Shown: piece by piece, positions 341 through 10,064 of the stretch
Layout: the number at the start of each line of letters is the position of its first letter
Position numbering within the stretch: the first letter of the stretch is position 1
Translations under genes and position numbers: made by a program
The notes under the pieces: generated by a model
The model's database searches: none
Seen by the model: the letters and a program-made list of their open reading frames with translations, nothing else
What the model was told of the DNA's origin: nothing
From: Hyalangium minutum
GTDB taxonomy: Bacteria; Myxococcota; Myxococcia; Myxococcales; Myxococcaceae
Assembly (NCBI RefSeq): GCF_000737315.1
Contig: NZ_JMCB01000036.1
Span: 1-10,066, forward strand
Length of the DNA stretch: 10,066 nucleotides
Direction of reading: 5' to 3'

Positions 341-404
341 CGAGAACCCCGTGGGAGGCGGACAGGAGCGTGTGCCCTGGCAAGGTGTGGCAGGGGAGGA
401 GCGG

Positions 405-1312
405 GTGGAGGAGCGCGGGTGGGCGTACCGGCGGAGGCAGCCGGAGGGGACGGTGCTGTACGAGGCGGTGAGGGATAACCTGGCCACGCTGCTGGAAGAG
501 GCGAGCGAGGTGGGGCGCGGCCTGCCCCGGTACGTGGAGCGGGACGTAAGCCCGGTACCTGGAGTGCGGAGTGCTGGCGCACGGCTTCGCGCGGGTGCGC
601 TGCGAGAGTGGCAAGGACGAGTTTCTCGTCGCCTTCTGGTGCAAGGGACGAGGGGTGTACCCCTCCTGCAACGCGAAGCGGGCGCATGTGACGGCAGTGC
701 ATCTGGTGGAGCGGGTGCTGCCGCATGTGCCCTACCGGCAGTGGACGCGGTCCTTTCCGCATCGGGTGCGGTGGGTGCTGCTCAAGGACGTGGGGCCCCT
801 CTCGGACGTCCTCACCGTTTTCCTGCGCGCGGGGCACGCCCTGCTGCGGCGGAGGGCACGGCGGCAGAGCCTACGTGGCGGGCAGGTTGGGGCCGTGTCG
901 TTCATCCCGTTCTTCGGCTCCGCCTTGCAGGTGACTCCTCATTTCCACTCGCTGGTACCGGACGGCGTCTTCGTGCCGTGAGAGGGCGGCGTGCGCTTCG
1001 AGCCGTTGCCGCCGCCCACGCAAGCAGAGGTGGAGAAGTTGCTGAAGGGGGTGCGGCACCGGGTGCTGCAGCTGGTGGAGAACGGAGCGGATGAAGCAGA
1101 GGAGGCCGCGAGAGGACTTTTGCCGAGTAGCTGAGGAGGACGTTGGACTTCGACGTGTTGGCCTGCGTGAGGTGTGGAGGCAGGCTTAAGGGTGTTGGCG
1201 GGCCGTGAAGGGAGCACGAGGGGTGCGCGCGATTGTGAAGCACCTGGGCCTGGCCACAGCAGGTGCGAGGCGAGCCCCGGCGCGAGGGCCACCCCAGGCA
1301 GCGTGGTGTTGA
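405..1312 (+). pseudogene. IS91-family transposase pseudogene (zinc-binding domain plus HUH domain)
   Basis: GTG at 405 follows GGAGG. It reads [25 protein letters not shown], has a +1 frameshift at ~546-555, and continues [48 protein letters not shown] (HUH motif). There is a premature TGA at 979-981 and an internal deletion at ~1080. Frameshifted C-terminal pieces follow ([17 protein letters not shown]; ARGPPQAAWC*, stop 1310-1312). Confidence 0.88.
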
Positions 1313-1515
1313 GGCGCTCAAGACAACCCACAGGCCCAGCTCAGGCTCTTGCCGCGCCCTGATGGGAGGGGGGCCTGGGCAGCAGTGTGCCCTATGGGGT
1401 GCTCGGCCCCCTCCACGGGCCTGGCACACAGCTCGGGCGGCTCCCGTCCGCGGCCCTCCTCGGCCCCTGCGCTCCAGCCCTCTCCTTCAACCGGCCTCCC
1501 ATTTTTCTGATGCTC
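1079..1515 (+). repeat. Direct repeat copy 1 (437 bp), 3' end of the IS91-like element
   Basis: Aligned by eye to 8305..8742: identical except for one G indel (G4 vs G5 near 1396) and three substitutions (1443, 1473, 1483). Confidence 0.97.
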
Positions 1516-1538
1516 CCCCCAAGCCTGAGTTCGAAGCA

Positions 1539-4247
1539 CTACCGCGGAGGGGGCTGCAGTCCTTCTATCGGCCGGAGCTTCGATCTGGGAGGCAAGAGTT
1601 GCCGCAGTACGTCGGGGCGGGTGCTGGCGGCGAGGGTAAAGCGGGAGCGCCAGCCGTTTTCTCGGAGCTGGTCGAGCCACCGCAGCGCTTCGTGGGCGGA
1701 CAGGCCTCTCCGCATCAGGGCGAAGTAGAGGTGGGCATACTCGTCCGCCAGCGAGGTGGCGAAGGTCACCGGGTCATCCGAGTTGATGGAGACGAGCAGC
1801 GGAGGAGGGGCCTCGGGAGGGCGAGCGGCTGGGGCTGCTTCATGTGCCACGGGCAGGTGCGGCCCCAGCGCCATCGCGGGGTGGTGCTCCAGCCCGAGCA
1901 TGTTCAGGACGAGCAGGTTGCTGGAGGGGTTCGACTCGACAGTGATCTCCCGCTCACGCAGCAGGGACCGCAGCCAGGCCTGCGCCTCCGCAGCCATGGC
2001 GGTCTCGGCGGGGTGGTTATGCACCTCGACGAGGCGCTGGCCCCGGCGGAACACGCCTGCATCCGTCAGGTGCTGCCAGACGAGGCGCAGGACGCGATCC
2101 ATCCGGGCCCTGGGCTCGGGCTCGTCGGGGAAACGCAGGTACTCCAGCACCTGAGTGTCATGGCGATAGCGTCTGGCGAGGAGAAGGAGGTCGAGCTCGA
2201 CGCGCGAGAGGCCCAGCAACTCGCGCGCGAGGGCGGTGGCTTCGCTGCGCACGCGTTCGACTCGCGCGGGCTGGGTGGGCAGCTGGCCCTGGCCATAGCG
2301 ATCCAGCTCCCAAAGCAGATCGTCCAGGCGCTCTTCCGCGGGCTGGACAGCGACGGGGTGCAGCTCGGCCAGCCGTGGGGCGTCCGGGCCGAGTGCGAGC
2401 CCATGTCCGATGCGGTCCCCGGTCTGGAGGATTTCGGACTCGAGCAGCTCGTGGATCCGACGCAGGCCCTCCACGAGCCGGCGGAACTCCTCTCCCGCGT
2501 GGTAGGTGATGTGGAGTTCCGTCGCCTCCCATTGGGGGGCGAGCCGGCGCAGGCGCGAGGCTGTCGTCCGGGACTGACGCCGGACCTGTTGCAGGAGCGG
2601 TACGGTGACCCAGGTGGGCGTGGCGAGCTCGGCGCTGGCGACATCCAACCCTCGAACGACGAGCAGCAACTCGGGGTGATGACTGAGCGCGGTGCGGATG
2701 GCCAGGGCCTGCCTTCGTCGGCCCAGGAACCAATCGCCGAAGCGGAAGCCGGAGCTGTTACCGGAAGGATCCGCGTGGAGGCGTGCGTGCCCGCCACGGC
2801 CCTGGGAGAGTTCCCGCTCCTTGATGAAGTGGAAGAGCAGGGCGCTCTCCGGGCGCTCCGGAGCCGCCATGTGGGCCTGGGCGAGGTTGCGCGCTTGGTC
2901 ACGGATGGAGACCCAGTCCGGCTCGGGCGTCGCGCGCATTTCGAGGGAGCCGAGGTGCAGTCCTCGGCGCGTGTGCCGCAGAGCACTCTCGGCGAGGTGC
3001 TCTTCCAGGGGCCCCCGCAGGGCGGAGAGCCGGTTGAAGTGGACCTGGAACCAGTCGAGCCCCGCTGTCCCCGGCTCTTCGATGAGAAAGGCATGGGCCT
3101 GACAGCGGACGCGCTGGTACTGCCAGAAGAGGAGTGCGAAGCCTGAGTCTTCTTGGCCCTCTCGCAGCAGATAGCGAAGCGCGCGGGTGGTGAAGCGCGT
3201 CTCGGTGAAGGGACGCCCCTCGATGGAGGGCAGCCAGGCATGGAGCGGATCCTGCGCGAAGAGGGCCGACAGTGAGGAATCGCGGGCCTCCCGGCGCGAG
3301 CCAGTGGGAGGCGCGCCCGTCAGCGCTCGGTAGACCCGCTGGAGGACGCCGGGCGACGGCGAAGGATCCTGCCTGCGGCCGGAGGGGCGCTGGAGGTAAT
3401 CGAGGGCGTGCGAGTACTCACGCTGGAGCGCGGCGGCGCCAGAGGGCCAGGAAGCGAGGCGGGCAAGCCGGGGCCCTGTGCTCGCCAGGAAGGCGCGCAG
3501 GTCTCCGCGCTCTCCATGGAGTTCGCGTGCGCGCAAGAAGGCCGCGAGGAAGAGTCGGGCGATGGCCGCCGCGAGGAGCTTGGATGCAAAGCCCATCGCG
3601 TCGCCAAAGGGATACGTGTCCTTGGGCCGCAGCTTTTCGGGCCAGGCGTCGCGGAACCACCCCATCCAGACGCTCCAGAGGGTGGGAAAGGAGTAGGCGG
3701 CACCTCCATGGAGGTGGGTTTCGGAGACAGGCCGGCCGAGCACATCGCGCAGGTGGGAGGTGGGCAGATGCACCTCGTCCCCGGAGGGCTCGTCCTCGCT
3801 CGGCGCGTGGAGGCCGGCAATGAGTAGATCCGCAGGGACGCGGAGGGAGAGCCACCGCCAGTGGGCGGCGCGTTCAGCCCGTGTGATGCCGTCACCGGCG
3901 GGATCGGGCCTCAACTGAGGATGATGACCATCGCTCGCCAGATACCGCTCCGCGAGGCGGCGAAGGTACTCGGCGAGGGAGAGCCCCGATGCAATCGGAG
4001 GGCTTCCGGGCTCCACCGCGAACCATGAGTGCTCGCGCAGGGCCCGGAGCGCCTCCAGGGAGAGCCCCTCCGAGCGAGTGCGCAGGTGTGCCTCCAGGTC
4101 CGAGGCCAGCTTCTGGGTTGGCCCATCGAGGACTCCCGCGGCGGCGTGTCCCAGTTGGAGCGTTCGGTGAGCATGGGCGGACAGCGAGGCGAGAGGCCAG
4201 GCCTCGGCCTCCGCCACGAGCCGCTGGTAGCGCCCGTCCCGACCCAT
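1539..4247 (-). CDS. rdrB: Adenosine deaminase-fold (amidohydrolase) protein, RADAR RdrB-like, ~902 aa
   Basis: Complete set of ADA motifs: ETHLH (H178/H180), YHAGEE (H583/E586), RIGHG (H615), ESNPSSN and SINSDDP (D824/D825), with a ~400-aa insertion after HxH. The start was moved from 4343 to ATG 4247, which lies 1 nt after the upstream stop and has GGAG 7 nt upstream. The rdrB label rests on motifs, size and the neighbouring ATPase. Confidence 0.85.
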   Translation of the reverse strand: MGRDGRYQRLVAEAEAWPLASLSAHAHRTLQLGHAAAGVLDGPTQKLASDLEAHLRTRSEGLSLEALRALREHSWFAVEPGSPPIASGLSLAEYLRRLAERYLASDGHHPQLRPDPAGDGITRAERAAHWRWLSLRVPADLLIAGLHAPSEDEPSGDEVHLPTSHLRDVLGRPVSETHLHGGAAYSFPTLWSVWMGWFRDAWPEKLRPKDTYPFGDAMGFASKLLAAAIARLFLAAFLRARELHGERGDLRAFLASTGPRLARLASWPSGAAALQREYSHALDYLQRPSGRRQDPSPSPGVLQRVYRALTGAPPTGSRREARDSSLSALFAQDPLHAWLPSIEGRPFTETRFTTRALRYLLREGQEDSGFALLFWQYQRVRCQAHAFLIEEPGTAGLDWFQVHFNRLSALRGPLEEHLAESALRHTRRGLHLGSLEMRATPEPDWVSIRDQARNLAQAHMAAPERPESALLFHFIKERELSQGRGGHARLHADPSGNSSGFRFGDWFLGRRRQALAIRTALSHHPELLLVVRGLDVASAELATPTWVTVPLLQQVRRQSRTTASRLRRLAPQWEATELHITYHAGEEFRRLVEGLRRIHELLESEILQTGDRIGHGLALGPDAPRLAELHPVAVQPAEERLDDLLWELDRYGQGQLPTQPARVERVRSEATALARELLGLSRVELDLLLLARRYRHDTQVLEYLRFPDEPEPRARMDRVLRLVWQHLTDAGVFRRGQRLVEVHNHPAETAMAAEAQAWLRSLLREREITVESNPSSNLLVLNMLGLEHHPAMALGPHLPVAHEAAPAARPPEAPPPLLVSINSDDPVTFATSLADEYAHLYFALMRRGLSAHEALRWLDQLRENGWRSRFTLAASTRPDVLRQLLPPRSKLRPIEGLQPPPR

Positions 4248-4248
4248 G

Positions 4249-7200
4249 TCACTTCTCCGAGTTGGCCAAGCCCATATGCACGAGCCAGGGGTGCCGAGGC
4301 TCCTGGAACGCAGCATCAATCTCGTTGAGCATCTGCCGAGCATGCTCTGGTGAGTGCCCAGAGTCCGTCAGCCGAGCGAGCCGGTGTGCCTGCAGTGCCT
4401 GCGTGTCGATGCCGAAGTTCCGGTCCCACTGGGTGAGGATGAGGTCGGCAAACGTGACGGGCAAGCCAGACTCGGGCGCGGCGAGCAGGGGGAGTCGCGC
4501 GGCCCAGTCCCGGAGTTCCTTCGTCCGGGGCTCTTGTGTGGGAAGGGCCTTGAGCAGCGTGTGGAGCGACTCCACCTGCTGCACCCAGCGGTCTTGGGAG
4601 AAGGGTTCGCTGATGGGGGGGGCCAGATACGCACGGTGGAAGCACATGAGGGAGCCTTCGATCAGCCACAGGGCGCGTGGCACGAGCTGATCCGAGACAG
4701 GGAGTTCCCGGTTCATGTTCGGCTGCGCATGTCCCGACAGCCAGCTCTCTTCGAGTACCTCCCACTCCCACAGCGTCCGCCATGCGATGGTGGGGAAGAC
4801 CCAGAACTCACTCTTTTTCCAGGAGCCCTTGAGCAGGTGCCACCAGCGGGGAGCTGGAGAGGGGGACGCGGCGGCGTCGGGTTGCTCCATGGCGAGGTCA
4901 TGGGCCACACGCAAAAAAGGCTCGGCGTCATTGGGAACGCCCGCAACCAAGCCGGCTCCTGTTTGACGAACCTGGGTGAAAGCCAGGTAGAGATTCTCGG
5001 TGATGGCGGAGTCGCGCCATCGCGCTTTCGTGAAGGACTCGTCCACACTCTTACGGAAGCGCTCAATGAACGGGGTCTCTTGCAGGACCACCCGGCCCTC
5101 GCGGAGCTGGAGCTTGGGCTCGAGGTCGCGCCTATCCCTCTCGTGGGTCCAGGTCTTCCAGAGCAAGGACAGGACCTGCGCTGCCTCTGGGGGCTTGGGT
5201 GCGAGCCGGACCTTCTCGCTTAGAGTCTTCAACAGCCAGAGCGGACTGAGCGCGAGCAGGCCCTGTCGGAAATTCGTGAAGTAGGTCGCAAGGGATGCGA
5301 AGGGAGTTCGAACGGAGCGGAGTTCCTTGAGCAGGTTGTGGACTTCGGGTTCCCGTAGTCCGCTCGGAGCGCGGAATTCTCTCTGGATGCGCTGGATGAA
5401 GGGGTGTGTCTCGAAGGCATCGTCAAGCTTGCGGAGCAGGGTCTCCAGTTCGCCAGGACCGATGGTGGATGAGTTGTACAAAGGTGTCTGGGACAAGGCC
5501 TCCTGCAGGCGCCTGCGTCGCTCCCAGCGCAATCCATTCGTGATGTCGTTCCAGCTCGCGCTGAAGATCCCCTCCAGGCAGTTGATCAGTCCATCGCTGA
5601 AGAGGAGCGAAAGGCCGCTTTCCGGGGCAGCGAGCAGTCCGAGGTGTTGCACCCACGTGGATATGGCGTTGTCGCGAGCAGTGCCCGTCATCTCCCGAAG
5701 CGCTCCAAGTTCTCGCTCCAGCCAAGTCCAACTCTGCTTCTCACCCAGATGAACGCTCTCGACAGGCTGGCGACGCGAGACGTGGATGGCGAGTCGCAAG
5801 AACAGCCACGCGAAGTCATCCGGGCGGTGGGTGGGGGGGGCGGGCCATGAGGTCGGAGTGGGCGCGTCTTCCAGTTCCTGGCGCCAGGCCTGTATGAATT
5901 GGGTCAGCTCCTGGTGCGTTCCCCAGTCCGGCAAGGGCCAATGCACCATGAAGGCCGCAGCCAGATCGTCGATGCGCGCTTCCGATCCCGAGGATTGAGT
6001 GCGGGCAACGAGCGAGGACATCGCAGGGAAGGCGGAGAACAGTGTCTCGCGAGATTCCGGCTCTTTGGTAGGGATGCGCTTCCACCGGATACGGGTGAGC
6101 GCACGTTCCACTTCTCGGCTGCTGATGGTGGGACCCGTGGAGTGGCCGTGAGGAGCGGCGGTGCGGGCAAAGTCGTTCGCGAGTCCATATGCCACCACGA
6201 GTCCATCGGACAGCCAGGCCATTTCATCAATGCCGCGTGTCTCAGGGTTCCACTCCGGCATGTACATCCTTAGGCGCGTCGGGTAGCCCAGGGAGATCAA
6301 GAAGTCCTCACCGATGGACCAGGGCAGGAACTGGGTTTCCAATTCGGTGTTGAACTTCTGAGCGTCGACGTGGAGGGCTGCTTCCCCCGTCTCGGTCTCC
6401 TCCAACCAGATGAGGTTGCGGAGCAATGCCCTGTCGGAGCCACTGCGCTCCGAAGCTTCGACAGCAAGCTCCCAGAGCTTCATGAGGGCGCGGGCGGTTC
6501 GGGGAAATTCTGTCCCGCTGCTGGTGAGGAGCTCATTCAGTGTGGACTTCAAGGACACCAGGTCCCGGAGCCTGTCGGGGAGGACCTGCGCGAGGCCGAG
6601 AGACCCCTCCAGGAGCAGCTTGGAGTCGAGGAGGCCTGTACCTCCTGGCATCTTGAACTGCTTCAACTGCTCCTGAATAGGCTCGCTGCGAGGGAAGGAG
6701 AGCCTCCGGCGCACCGAGATGGGAGGCAGCTCACACCGCTGTGGCGGCGGAATGACCTTGTCGTAGATGGCCCTGGGAAGGTTCCTGAGGGTTTGGGGTA
6801 GCGACTGCTCGGGGATCCTCTCCCTACGCGAGAGGTCGAGCAGGAGCGAGTCCTCGAAGAGCGTACTATCGCCGGTCATGAGGAAGGCCAGTCGCGGGTG
6901 ATGGATCTTGCGCACCAGCGACAGCAACTCCGGCGTCCTTCGCGGGTTCATGTCCGCGTCATCAATGGCGAGCAGAAAGAGGGGGTAGTGGCCCTTGTCC
7001 CAGCGGCGCCAGCGTCGATAGTCATCCGCGAGCGCGTCGAGGAAGTCCCGGAAGGCTCCGGCCATCCGCATCCGATGCCGCTCCCCATGCTCGGCCTCCA
7101 GCGCATAGGCCTCGGGGTCGAGCCGAGTCTTTCGGATGTCCGGTCCATCCCAGCCCAGGGTCGTGACGCGGACGAACTCCCGCCACTTCTTGCGCGAGGG

Positions 7201-7722
7201 CTTCTCCTGAGCCTCTTCCCCTTGCCATGGCGCCGACGAGGAGGGGAGCGCCACGTCCTCCCCACCCTCCAGCGCGGCGACCACCCGCTCCAGGTGCCCG
7301 ACGAGGTGGAGAAGCAGGTTGGTGGTCTCGGGCAGGGGCTCGAGGTCGACCAGACCCACTGGCACGATGGGGTAGCCCGGCTCGATGTCCCAGGATTCGG
7401 GCCGGAAGTCGCGCAGAGTCTTCACCTTGTTCGTCGCGGCCTTGTTGTAAAGGTTCAACAAGGTGACGAGCAGGGCGGACTTCCCAGAGCCCCGGCGCCC
7501 ATCAATGAGGACCGTGGGGTTGAGGCGCTTCTTCTCGATGAGAGGCAGATAACCGTGGGCCCTGCTGCCCTTGGCGGGGGAGAAGGGCGCCTCGGCTAAC
7601 TCGCGGAGGAAGCCGGTGGCACGCGTCCCCGCCTTGAGCTGATCTTCGGTGAGCTCCTTGGGCAGCAGGATGCGTGCTTCGGTGCGTGGCTGGAAGGGAG
7701 ACTTGGGGTTCGTGTTGGACAT
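4249..7722 (-). CDS. rdrA: Large P-loop ATPase, RADAR RdrA-like, 1157 aa
   Basis: Walker A in VLIDGRRGSGKS, Walker B in FLLAIDDAD, then FLMTGD and YDKVIPP..R motifs and a long helical C-terminal region. The ORF is uninterrupted and sits directly upstream of the deaminase. No clear RBS precedes ATG 7722. Confidence 0.82.
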   Translation of the reverse strand: MSNTNPKSPFQPRTEARILLPKELTEDQLKAGTRATGFLRELAEAPFSPAKGSRAHGYLPLIEKKRLNPTVLIDGRRGSGKSALLVTLLNLYNKAATNKVKTLRDFRPESWDIEPGYPIVPVGLVDLEPLPETTNLLLHLVGHLERVVAALEGGEDVALPSSSAPWQGEEAQEKPSRKKWREFVRVTTLGWDGPDIRKTRLDPEAYALEAEHGERHRMRMAGAFRDFLDALADDYRRWRRWDKGHYPLFLLAIDDADMNPRRTPELLSLVRKIHHPRLAFLMTGDSTLFEDSLLLDLSRRERIPEQSLPQTLRNLPRAIYDKVIPPPQRCELPPISVRRRLSFPRSEPIQEQLKQFKMPGGTGLLDSKLLLEGSLGLAQVLPDRLRDLVSLKSTLNELLTSSGTEFPRTARALMKLWELAVEASERSGSDRALLRNLIWLEETETGEAALHVDAQKFNTELETQFLPWSIGEDFLISLGYPTRLRMYMPEWNPETRGIDEMAWLSDGLVVAYGLANDFARTAAPHGHSTGPTISSREVERALTRIRWKRIPTKEPESRETLFSAFPAMSSLVARTQSSGSEARIDDLAAAFMVHWPLPDWGTHQELTQFIQAWRQELEDAPTPTSWPAPPTHRPDDFAWLFLRLAIHVSRRQPVESVHLGEKQSWTWLERELGALREMTGTARDNAISTWVQHLGLLAAPESGLSLLFSDGLINCLEGIFSASWNDITNGLRWERRRRLQEALSQTPLYNSSTIGPGELETLLRKLDDAFETHPFIQRIQREFRAPSGLREPEVHNLLKELRSVRTPFASLATYFTNFRQGLLALSPLWLLKTLSEKVRLAPKPPEAAQVLSLLWKTWTHERDRRDLEPKLQLREGRVVLQETPFIERFRKSVDESFTKARWRDSAITENLYLAFTQVRQTGAGLVAGVPNDAEPFLRVAHDLAMEQPDAAASPSPAPRWWHLLKGSWKKSEFWVFPTIAWRTLWEWEVLEESWLSGHAQPNMNRELPVSDQLVPRALWLIEGSLMCFHRAYLAPPISEPFSQDRWVQQVESLHTLLKALPTQEPRTKELRDWAARLPLLAAPESGLPVTFADLILTQWDRNFGIDTQALQAHRLARLTDSGHSPEHARQMLNEIDAAFQEPRHPWLVHMGLANSEK
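4255..4258 (-). promoter_or_regulatory. Shine-Dalgarno site for the deaminase, embedded in the last codons of the ATPase
   Basis: Minus strand reads ...tcGGAGaagTGAcATG: stop, 1 nt, start. This suggests translational coupling. Confidence 0.65.
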
Positions 7723-7849
7723 GGCCCGGGTCGGTCAGACAGCACGGGCACGGACTGAAGCCGTGCTCTAGGTGTGGCGTGGCCCGGATTCTGGGCGCAG
7801 GCGAGCAGGGGCGGAAGTTTCTGGTGGGCGCGGTGGGTGACACTGGAAC

Positions 7850-8071
7850 TCAGTAGCCGGGCGGCACCTCGTTCCCGCTAAGCCGTGCGAAGCCGTGCGC
7901 CAGCACCCCGCACTCCAGGTACCCGGCGAAGTCCCGCTCCATATACCGGGGCAGGCCTCTTCCCACCTCGTTCGCCTCCGCTAGCAGCGTGGTGAGGTTG
8001 TCCCTCACCGCCTCGTACAGCACCGGCCCCTCCGGCTGCCTCCTCCGGTACGCCCACCAGCGCTCCTCCAC
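7850..8071 (-). pseudogene. 5' fragment of a second IS91-family transposase, inverted relative to the left copy
   Basis: GTG at 8071 follows GGAGG and reads [62 protein letters not shown]. Homology stops at ~7884 and the frame closes at TGA 7852..7850. About 89% identical to 405..593 (about 20 differences in ~188 nt, counted by hand). Confidence 0.9.
7880..7899. repeat. Perfect 10-bp tandem duplication (aagccgtgcg x2) at the truncation point of the inverted transposase fragment
   Basis: 7880-7889 is identical to 7890-7899. Confidence 0.85.
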
Positions 8072-8136
8072 CTGCCCCTCCCCAGCTACACCTGTGCTCC
8101 CACGAACCTCCCTGGAGCACCGTGCGCCCCTGGTTC

Positions 8137-8188
8137 TGTCTCCAAAATGTCTCCAGGATTGGAGGGGACTCGGAGGGACAGGTGGGAC
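8137..8188. repeat. Helically phased short direct repeats
   Basis: tgtctcca at 8137-8144 and 8148-8155 (11-bp period); gggac at 8165, 8175 and 8184 (10- and 9-bp spacing). Confidence 0.6.
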
Positions 8189-8256
8189 TGCCGGGGATTC
8201 CCCCGTGGACTCGAAGTGCCCGGATTCACTCGCGATTCCTCGAAAGGCGTGTGCTC

Positions 8257-8742
8257 CCCCAAGCAGGAGAGGAGGAGGCGAGAGAGGGGAAGGAGGCAGC
8301 GGGCAGAACGGAGCGGATGAAGCAGAGGAGGCCGCGAGAGGACTTTTGCCGAGTAGCTGAGGAGGACGTTGGACTTCGACGTGTTGGCCTGCGTGAGGTG
8401 TGGAGGCAGGCTTAAGGGTGTTGGCGGGCCGTGAAGGGAGCACGAGGGGTGCGCGCGATTGTGAAGCACCTGGGCCTGGCCACAGCAGGTGCGAGGCGAG
8501 CCCCGGCGCGAGGGCCACCCCAGGCAGCGTGGTGTTGAGGCGCTCAAGACAACCCACAGGCCCAGCTCAGGCTCTTGCCGCGCCCTGATGGGAGGGGGGC
8601 CTGGGCAGCAGTGTGCCCTATGGGGGTGCTCGGCCCCCTCCACGGGCCTGGCACACAGCTCGGGCGGCTTCCGTCCGCGGCCCTCCTCGGCCCCTGCGCC
8701 CCAGCCCTCACCTTCAACCGGCCTCCCATTTTTCTGATGCTC
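8257..8742 (+). mobile_element. 3' remnant of the IS91-like element, right copy
   Basis: Reads [18 protein letters not shown] / [17 protein letters not shown] / VKGARGVRAIVKHLGLATAGARRAPARGPPQAAWC* (stop 8536-8538) across three +1 frameshifts and a TAG at 8354-8356, then the same noncoding end as the left copy. It keeps ~48 bp more transposase-like sequence (8257-8304) than the left copy. Confidence 0.85.
8305..8742 (+). repeat. Direct repeat copy 2 (438 bp)
   Basis: About 99% identical to 1079..1515; offset 7226-7227 bp. Confidence 0.97.
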
Positions 8743-8837: not shown

Positions 8838-10064
8838 CTACGGCACCATCCCCTCCAGGGCACTCTGCATGATCGCATCATGCCCGTAGTCAGGAAGGTG
8901 GATCCTGTCTGCGGGCGGCGATAGCAGCTTGCCCGCAAGCCTGCTCAAGCCGGGTTTTGTCGCGAGGCTGAGCGCGGCCTGCTGAAGCGCGATACCGGTG
9001 CGAGTCTGCGGCTGGGCAATGCGCGGGCCGAGCTTGGGCACGTCCTGCGCCTGATCCACGTAGGGCCGCATGATCCGCTCGTAGGCGGCGAAGGCTTCGG
9101 CATGATCCTCGTGTCGGCCAAGCTCGCCGGCGAGCACATAGGCACCGACAAGGGCCAAGCTGGTCCCCATGCCGCTAATGGGGGAGGCGCACCAGGCAGC
9201 ATCGCCGGTCAGGACGACGCGGCCGATGGACCACCGATCCATCTTCACCTGGCCAATCGCCTCGAAGTAGAAGTCCCTCGCATCGTCGAGGCCGGCGAGT
9301 ACGCGCGGTGTTTCCCAGCCCGCGTCGGCGAACTTCTCCTTCAGCATCGCCTTCTGCTCGTCGCGGGACAGATCCTCGTAGCCCACGGGCTTCTCTTGCA
9401 GCCCCAGAAGGGCGCGCGTGGTGCCGACATGGTCTGGGCGCAAGAAGACGCTGCGCCCTCCCGGCGCGTTGAACCAGCGGGCGACCTTCCCGTCGTTTGA
9501 GCCCTTCGGGATTGTGAAGTAGGCCGTATAGAGGTCGAGCGGTCGGCGTTTCACCGCGTCTCCGAACGCCAGCTTTCGCGTCGACGAGCCGATTCCCTCG
9601 GCGGCGATGACGAGGTCGAAGCGGCGGGTGCCGCCCTTGTCGAACGTGACTTCGACCCTGTCGCCCTTGTCGTCCAGCACGGTGATGCGATCGCCGAAGA
9701 TATATTCAGCGCGGTCGTGGCTGTGCTCAACGAGCAACCGCGCAAGCTCGCCGCGGAGGATCTCAAGCTCCGCGGTCGGTCCGTTGCCACCGAACTGCGC
9801 CGCGTCGAACTCGGCCTTGACCCTGTTCTCCTCGTCCACGAAAGCGATCGCCACCTCACCCGTTGACCGCTGCCGCACCTCATCCTCGAGCCCCATGCGC
9901 CGGATCACCTCCCGGCCCGCGCCACGGACGTCAATGTTCTGCCCACCGTCGCGGAACTCAGGTGCGCGTTCGACCACCGTGACGCTCATGCCAAAGCGGG
10001 TGAGCCACCAGGCCAGCGTGGGCCCCGCGATGCTCGCCCCAGTCACCAAGACATGCCGCTTCAT
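8838..10064 (-). CDS. FAD-dependent monooxygenase/oxidoreductase (UbiH / FAD_binding_3-like), 408 aa
   Basis: N-terminal VLVTGASIAG dinucleotide-binding motif, DLVIAAEGIGS (variant of the DG motif) and RVVLTGDAAWCASPISGMGTSLA (GD motif). The start is 2 nt from the window edge, so the upstream context is not visible. Confidence 0.92.
   Translation of the reverse strand: MKRHVLVTGASIAGPTLAWWLTRFGMSVTVVERAPEFRDGGQNIDVRGAGREVIRRMGLEDEVRQRSTGEVAIAFVDEENRVKAEFDAAQFGGNGPTAELEILRGELARLLVEHSHDRAEYIFGDRITVLDDKGDRVEVTFDKGGTRRFDLVIAAEGIGSSTRKLAFGDAVKRRPLDLYTAYFTIPKGSNDGKVARWFNAPGGRSVFLRPDHVGTTRALLGLQEKPVGYEDLSRDEQKAMLKEKFADAGWETPRVLAGLDDARDFYFEAIGQVKMDRWSIGRVVLTGDAAWCASPISGMGTSLALVGAYVLAGELGRHEDHAEAFAAYERIMRPYVDQAQDVPKLGPRIAQPQTRTGIALQQAALSLATKPGLSRLAGKLLSPPADRIHLPDYGHDAIMQSALEGMVP

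Follow-up and report, generated by a model that had tools for sequence, protein, structure and literature searches.

A probable, highly divergent RADAR system with a duplicated ATPase C-terminal module in Hyalangium minutum

Hyalangium minutum carries two adjacent minus-strand genes, an rdrA-like AAA+ ATPase gene followed by an rdrB-like adenosine deaminase (ADA) gene. The pair probably constitutes a functional, highly divergent RADAR anti-phage system organized as a two-gene operon. Both genes lie in a window that comprises the entire 10,066-bp contig JMCB01000036.1 of assembly GCA_000737315.1, and the coordinates of their features are collected in Table 1. JMCB is the accession prefix of H. 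minutum DSM 14724T (PMC5441343). An initial annotation of this DNA had proposed a RADAR-like pair of two long uninterrupted genes joined by TGA-c-ATG. Both reading frames and their junction were found as described, and the homology to RdrA and RdrB was upheld by profile, profile-profile, and structure comparison. The two Walker motifs, A and B, and the metal-binding and catalytic ADA residues that it had listed are intact, and all of them except Asp825 are invariant in the family.

The deaminase (902 aa) matched the NCBIfam RdrB profile with an E-value of 6e-29 (101 bits) and showed a partial match to the PADLOC RdrB profile (7e-22, 75 bits). In a phmmer search of the PDB, residues 506-870 matched Escherichia coli RdrB (8fnw/8hr7) at 3.6e-18, and ordinary ADAs gave E ≥ 0.06. 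An AlphaFold2 (AF2) model built from 45 homologues reached a predicted local distance difference test score (pLDDT) of 89 and a predicted template modelling score (pTM) of 0.90. Foldseek aligned this model over its full length (~950 columns) with eight E. coli RdrB chains, resulting in E-values of 1e-25 to 7.5e-22 and TM-scores of 0.60-0.74. The next PDB matches were plain ADAs at 2e-5, with a query TM-score (TMq) of 0.25. RdrB carries three large insertions that ordinary deaminases lack and from which its dodecameric shell is formed (PMC9994260). A full-length RdrB fold match of this quality indicates that the RdrB-specific insertions 1-3 are conserved in the modelled window deaminase.

Inside the predicted active site, His178, His180, His583, Glu586, His615, and Asp824 were invariant in the family alignment (44-45 members). 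Asp825, the second residue of the Asp pair, is variable and is replaced by Asn in the Sandaracinus homologue. In an alignment of the window deaminase with the Bacillus cereus RdrB and the RdrB of Aliivibrio salmonicida annotated by the Prokaryotic Genome Annotation Pipeline (PGAP), the His tetrad, the catalytic Glu, the GDRIGH loop, ExxPxSN, and N-x-D were all invariant. The spacing from HxH to HAGE is 402 residues in the window deaminase and 343 residues in E. coli RdrB. As modelled, the window deaminase is a full-length structural homologue of RdrB with a complete ADA active site.

Single-sequence searches with the ATPase failed. Its sole match in the PDB by phmmer was the P-loop of RsgA (E = 0.44), and Pfam gave AAA_16 alone, below threshold. 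Recognition took a profile of the family and a model of the structure. With a profile of 44 homologues, E. coli RdrA (8hr7/8fnt) was the sole significant PDB match (6e-4), and Walker A, Walker B, and the TGD sensor 1 were collinear with E. coli RdrA in this match. The same profile aligned with the PGAP-annotated Aliivibrio RdrA over 231 columns at 94% probability (hhalign, E = 1.2e-7). Asp257, in the Walker B motif, was invariant in the family alignment. The motifs GxRGxGK[ST], DDxD, ExLxxxR, GD, and PxxxR were invariant among the window, Sandaracinus, Stigmatella, B. cereus, and Aliivibrio ATPases.

The AF2 model of the ATPase had a pLDDT of 82 and a pTM of 0.60. Its 15 best PDB matches by Foldseek were RdrA chains from E. 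coli and Streptococcus suis (3e-7 to 1e-4), followed by Cdc6 at 0.06. The structure prediction proposed in the initial annotation as a check hence returned RADAR proteins for both genes, RdrB at 1e-25 and RdrA for the top 15, and not members of non-RADAR families. Compared with other AAA+ clades, RdrA has two hallmarks, a 'crown' of four helices that lies between strand 2 and the Walker B strand and touches RdrB, and three helices between the sensor-1 strand and the one that follows it (PMC9994260). In the model, strand 119-126 and the Walker B strand (248-254) enclose helices 136-153, 175-190, 194-197, and 203-238. Helices 286-301, 310-313, and 315-323 follow the sensor-1 strand (278-284) and precede strand 329-332. 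Both RdrA-specific insertions are thus present in the predicted structure. Seen through profiles and structure only, the window ATPase is of the RdrA type.

The junction of the two genes reads TGAcATG, within gagaagTGAcATGggt, and the gap between the stop codon and the next start codon is 1 nt. Given this gap, the two genes are almost certainly co-transcribed. A mechanical list of open reading frames (ORFs) placed the deaminase start at 4343, and homologue alignments begin at the ATG at 4247. GC content at third codon positions (GC3) was 0.80-0.82 and at second positions (GC2) 0.47-0.51 in both gene frames, and homology searches gave homologues that span both proteins end to end. The ratio of non-synonymous to synonymous rates (dN/dS), computed against two orthologous loci, ranged overall from 0.13 to 0.52, with 0.13-0.17 for the deaminase and 0.14-0.21 for the AAA+ domain. 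Both cassette genes are under purifying selection. Because of the GC3 signature, the full-length homologues, and dN/dS well below 1, both frames are real genes and not chance GC-rich ORFs (62-70% GC). Orthologues of the pair in two other genomes are likewise intact.

Antisense to the deaminase gene we observed a further open frame of 627 aa (1263..3146, plus strand). It shows the mirror pattern, with high GC1 and lower GC3, and is therefore a shadow ORF and not a gene. Upstream of the ATPase start codon by ~30-50 nt lies a hairpin-capable inverted repeat, GCACGG-7 nt-CCGTGC (7748-7770, minus strand), which could be an operator or mere chance. No RNA genes were detected in the window by Rfam at gathering thresholds or by tRNA scans.

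The named relatives of the pair all belong to Myxococcota, namely Corallococcus, Hyalangium, Archangium, Stigmatella, Myxococcus, Pyxidicoccus, Sorangium, Polyangium, Sandaracinus, and metagenome-assembled genomes (MAGs) of Nannocystaceae and Kofleriaceae. An exhaustive profile search returned, as clusters at 50% identity, 2698 at E ≤ 1e-3 and 857 at E ≤ 1e-30. The family looks confined to Myxococcota in a scan with one peptide pattern, which does not amount to presence or absence per genome. Every related locus with enough sequence had the deaminase downstream of its ATPase match, on the same strand and at the spacing that a single ATPase gene requires. Flanking sequences showed similarity in only 12 of the 378 pairs compared upstream and in 2 of the 300 compared downstream. 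All-against-all tblastx of the 3-kb flanks of 28 loci detected no conserved third gene of the rdrC/rdrD type, and the window holds none either, as the initial annotation had noted. The ATPase and deaminase genes form a cassette complete in itself, which occurs across Myxococcota in neighbourhoods that are otherwise unrelated.

Three myxobacterial MAGs hold two distinct ATPase-family copies each, on separate contigs (L016/L032, L018/L033, and L028/L034). For L018/L033, a deaminase was observed on the same strand 3' of both copies. Contigs L016 and L034 end before one could appear.

Beyond residue ~400, the ATPase is built of a ~375-aa module that occurs twice in tandem. By hhalign, copy 1 matched copy 2 at 99.8% (E = 8e-30, 299 columns), and the WPLPxW and LLAAPESGL motifs are repeated in each copy. 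Family members of 1060-1230 aa have two module copies and members of ~710-800 aa have one. The short one-module ATPases at loci L018 and L021 are complete genes. The modules showed dN/dS values of 0.34-0.77, of which 0.63-0.77 was reached against the closest relative, and their non-synonymous rate was several-fold above that of the AAA+ domain. The non-synonymous excess in the C-terminal part was significant (Fisher p = 0.001 and 6e-6). This faster evolution would fit an arms-race recognition surface or weaker constraint, and does not by itself prove positive selection. The tandem-duplicated, fast-evolving C-terminal module is a feature unreported for RADAR. We infer that the duplicated modules are most likely the part that recognizes the phage cue. 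A bolder and rather doubtful proposal is that the myxobacterial clade forms a distinct RADAR subtype, in which the module, in one copy (~730-800-aa forms) or two (~1100-1230-aa forms), would serve as a clade-specific sensor that sets myxophage recognition. If this were true, module duplication would be a way to widen or combine recognition specificities in one RADAR complex.

By analogy with characterized RADAR, RdrB would form a multimeric shell on which RdrA rings dock via the 'crown' insertion (PMC9994260). Upon phage infection, the complex would deaminate ATP and dATP to inosine triphosphate (ITP) and dITP (PMC9994260). Adenine nucleotides would then be depleted while inosine nucleotides flood the cell, and phage replication would stop (PMC9994260). 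The ATPase would act as sensor and gate. That the window system is active is supported indirectly, through purifying selection and the conserved catalytic residues.

Several results weigh against a RADAR assignment. The ATPase scored 10.4 bits with the PADLOC RdrA profile (E = 0.035, nothing at E ≤ 0.01). The NCBIfam RdrA profile, which has a cutoff of 600, gave it 24.3 bits and matched only the P-loop. The deaminase too is below the curated threshold of the NCBIfam NF041743/NF041744 equivalogs, with 101 bits for RdrB against a cutoff of 800. The PADLOC check suggested in the initial annotation was borne out for RdrB (7e-22) and gave no significant match for RdrA, and the divergence that the annotation had claimed was, if anything, understated for the ATPase. 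Foldseek TM-scores of the ATPase were low (0.2-0.36), because only ~400-500 residues superpose. Neither C-terminal module showed any signal against the Aliivibrio or B. cereus RdrA C-termini (hhalign, probability <1%). The E. coli RdrA C-terminus was compared by structure only, and Foldseek alignments that reach into the ATPase C-terminus had a root mean square deviation (rmsd) of 17-19 Å. Scans detected no sigma-70 consensus promoter and no terminator at either cassette end, a result that is little informative at 68% GC. Pfam-annotated neighbours at seven related loci were mostly metabolic or regulatory housekeeping genes in no recognizable defence islands. These ordinary neighbours give no guilt-by-association support for a defence role. 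At one of the seven loci, a PIN toxin gene and an AAA_15/DUF3696 gene were nearby.

Three other explanations were weighed, which together hold a small share of the probability. It is unlikely that the pair shares RADAR ancestry and has another role, whether on a different adenine substrate, through a signalling nucleotide as in Kongming, or in predation, development, or inter-strain conflict. We take Kongming to be a nucleobase-modification signalling system described in a preprint. As the system in that preprint exemplifies, other ADA-based immune systems use their product differently (bioRxiv 10.1101/2024.12.20.629578). The extreme divergence from characterized RADAR (ATPase ~13-18% identical to RdrA in the aligned part), the clade-specific duplicated module at the ATPase C-terminus, and the position of the loci outside evident defence islands would also suit a different role. 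However, the whole RdrB architecture appears conserved, including the assembly insertions and active-site residues, and a third effector gene on which a signal could act is absent from the 3-kb flanks of the 28 loci. Moreover, the pair looks like a defence cassette in that its two genes are strictly coupled, its neighbourhoods vary, it is associated with IS DNA, and it seems to have been transferred laterally.

It is very improbable that the locus is a decaying relic, with ORFs that are open yet unused and carried along with insertion sequence (IS) debris. The cassette does lie between broken IS91 copies, module dN/dS rises to 0.63-0.77 against the closest relative, and high GC favours long chance frames, such as the 627-aa antisense ORF. 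Against this, the two frames stay open for 3.5 and 2.7 kb and carry a coding GC3 signature, every catalytic residue is intact, dN/dS of the deaminase and the AAA+ domain is well below 1 in two independent comparisons, and orthologues are intact in two further genomes. A housekeeping purine-salvage ADA beside an unrelated P-loop NTPase is effectively refuted. The weak Pfam A_deaminase and NCBIfam adenosine-deaminase matches that speak for it cover only the C-terminal ~90 residues and score 20-26 bits against cutoffs of 216-530, with 18-22.5 bits for TIGR01430/PRK09358. The protein is, at 902 aa, ~2.5x as long as Add (~330 aa), has Foldseek E-values to RdrB ~20 orders of magnitude smaller than to any ADA, and is strictly coupled to an RdrA-like gene. 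Its family, which looks restricted to Myxococcota in the scan with one peptide pattern, occurs among unrelated neighbours, and this fits a mobile cassette.

The DNA around the putative RADAR cassette contains decayed IS91-family sequence, as the initial annotation had recognized. Zn_Tnp_IS91 and the start of Y2_Tnp matched in Pfam at 571-981 (plus strand), in a frame broken by frameshifts and stops. The tnpA pseudogene (351-1290, plus strand) has frameshifts and a stop near 979, and has lost most of the Y2 catalytic domain internally. It keeps the C-terminal CxRCGG motif, followed by a ~225-nt tail. A 437-nt sequence from this element is present as two direct copies, 99.1% identical over 438 nt by self-BLAST. 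Its coding content is just the decayed tnpA 3' end (last ~70 codons), which the ~225-nt tail follows. The copies bracket the cassette and an IS fragment, and recombination between them would excise the operon. Beyond the right copy lies an intact FAD-dependent monooxygenase gene of 408 aa (8838-10064, minus strand; FAD_binding_3, 1.2e-18), which is unrelated to the cassette.

Homology to Hyalangium rubrum (L005, 90.5% nt) covers exactly 1516-7884, from the IS end to the IS fragment. Only the cassette is shared, and the flanks differ. Homology to Corallococcus sp. AB049A (L001, 95% nt) covers 1259-8508 and extends into the IS remnants, with a synonymous rate (dS) of 0.05-0.09 between the two copies. 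In the family placement used, Corallococcus belongs to Myxococcaceae and Hyalangium to Archangiaceae. The higher identity to Corallococcus than to the congener H. rubrum, together with the low dS, therefore suggests a recent transfer between families. Judged from these sequence comparisons, a recent passage of the cassette between Hyalangium and Corallococcus seems likely, with the IS91-like element as a possible carrier. This apparent movement is likewise a feature unreported for RADAR.

Table 1. Coordinates of the cassette, its protein motifs and domains, and the flanking elements in the window.
Feature	Position	Strand	Remarks
rdrA-like gene, 1157 aa, ATG start	4249..7722	minus	RdrA-type AAA+ ATPase (predicted), then two tandem C-terminal modules
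AAA+ ATPase domain (residues 1-400)	6523..7722	minus	both RdrA-type helical insertions, AF2 model
Walker A GRRGSGKS (residues 75-82)	7477..7500	minus	G75, R77, G78, G80, K81 invariant across 44 family members and the RdrAs of B. cereus and Aliivibrio
Walker B LLAIDDADM (residues 250-258; D254, D255)	6949..6975	minus	aligns with E. coli RdrA D221/D222; invariant
Sensor 1 TGD (residues 283-285)	6868..6876	minus	aligns with E. coli RdrA ATGD, D253 = sensor 1; G284, D285 invariant
C-terminal module copy 1 (residues 409-784)	5371..6498	minus	motifs WPLPDW, LLAAPESGL; dN/dS 0.34-0.77
C-terminal module copy 2 (residues 847-1154)	4261..5184	minus	missing from ~730-800-aa family members; dN/dS 0.50-0.63
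rdrB-like gene, 902 aa	1539..4247	minus	adenosine deaminase with RdrB-type insertions (predicted)
HxH metal-binding motif (H178, H180)	3708..3716	minus	invariant in family, B. cereus and Aliivibrio RdrB; equals E. coli RdrB H152/H154
HAGE motif (H583 metal ligand, E586 catalytic)	2490..2501	minus	invariant; aligns with E. coli RdrB H498/E501
H615 in GDRIGHG, last catalytic histidine	2403..2405	minus	invariant; aligns with E. coli RdrB H530
D824-D825 in INSDDP, deaminase Asp pair	1773..1778	minus	D824 invariant
Native 5' leader, upstream end of shared cassette	7723..7884	minus	promoter presumed here; Hyalangium rubrum homology (90.5% nt) stops at 7884
Decayed IS91-family element, frameshifted and internally deleted tnpA plus 3' tail	351..1515	plus	ends exactly at cassette border; Pfam, three-frame reading
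Left copy of 437-nt direct repeat	1079..1515		3' end of IS91-like element
Inverted IS91 tnpA N-terminal fragment	7883..8093	minus	88% identical to 383-594; 160 nt upstream of ATPase start
Right copy of 437-nt direct repeat	8305..8742		repeat search, self-BLAST

RADAR has been catalogued in <1% of genomes. Its 270 catalogued systems (Table S1 of PMC9994260) include none from Myxococcota. No paper linking RADAR to myxobacteria was found in the literature, and RADAR is not named in the main text of a 2026 survey that applied DefenseFinder to 3,229 myxobacterial genomes. In named sources, the clade members that we saw carry the labels 'hypothetical protein', 'ATP-binding protein', or 'adenosine deaminase'. 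The locus represents a large myxobacterial clade left without a RADAR label by standard annotation and is worth recording. Little is known of the phage biology of Myxococcota, and a dedicated profile would enlarge the phylum's defence inventory by one system. For the question of what RdrA senses in RADAR, the one- and two-module forms with their fast-evolving C-terminus offer a natural series for locating the signal-reading part. The conceptual gain is modest, because RADAR is already known as diverse and the same biochemistry is expected.

The characterized RADAR systems come from E. coli P0304799.3, Citrobacter rodentium DBS100, and S. suis SS993, with structures 8fnt, 8fnu, 8fnv, 8fnw, and 8hr7-8hrc in the PDB (PMC9994260). 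They share with the window the rdrA-then-rdrB operon on the same strand, and an accessory gene is not required. The AAA+ core, in which the Walker B/sensor-1 region aligns with E. coli RdrA, is also shared, as are both predicted helical insertions. RdrB and the window deaminase have in common the His tetrad, the catalytic Glu, the full-length fold and, according to the model, the three large insertions. Identity between the window and characterized RADAR is ~18-25% and does not extend beyond the core of the ATPase and the deaminase's C-terminal half. Validated RADAR systems themselves show just 22-28% identity to each other, limited to the ATPase domain and RdrB's C-terminal part. The window ATPase is ~250-300 aa longer than characterized RdrA. 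The proteins had been annotated initially as longer than the enterobacterial examples, and at 1157 and 902 aa they do exceed the C. rodentium pair (851 and 856 aa) and still stay within the catalogued range, in which B. cereus has 1178 and 907 aa (Table S1 of PMC9994260).

In a tblastn search of plasmids, a B. cereus pair with proteins of 1178 and 907 aa was located on NZ_CP125990.1 (locus L007, 1815-8086), where RefSeq labels it 'hypothetical protein'. Its lengths are exactly those of the B. cereus RADAR system in Table S1 of PMC9994260. The B. cereus RdrB aligned with the window deaminase over 790 residues (24% identity, 2e-52). Its RdrA aligned with the N-terminal 350 residues of the window ATPase (24%, 3e-16), and the C-terminal region showed no detectable similarity. 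PADLOC scores for RdrA and RdrB were 775 and 965 bits for Aliivibrio, 39.9 and 121 bits for B. cereus, and 10.4 and 75 bits for the window. This series places the window locus at the outer edge of the RADAR family. Since a B. cereus RADAR system scores just 39.9 and 121 bits, curated thresholds mark close equivalogs and not the outer limit of the family, and long-form RADAR is therefore under-annotated outside Myxococcota too.

Cad1, the CARF-adenosine deaminase of type III CRISPR (PDB 9c67, 8z3k), resembles the window deaminase as an immune effector with an ADA fold that converts ATP to ITP. Its PADLOC match to the window deaminase was weak (0.0018) and covered the deaminase part only. Its structural match by Foldseek had an E-value of 0.01-0.03, compared with 1e-25 for RdrB. 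No CARF domain was detected by Pfam, and no CRISPR genes were observed in the window. By comparison with these systems, the locus is a divergent RADAR variant, which falls below the curated equivalog thresholds and shows all the structural and organizational features that could be tested.

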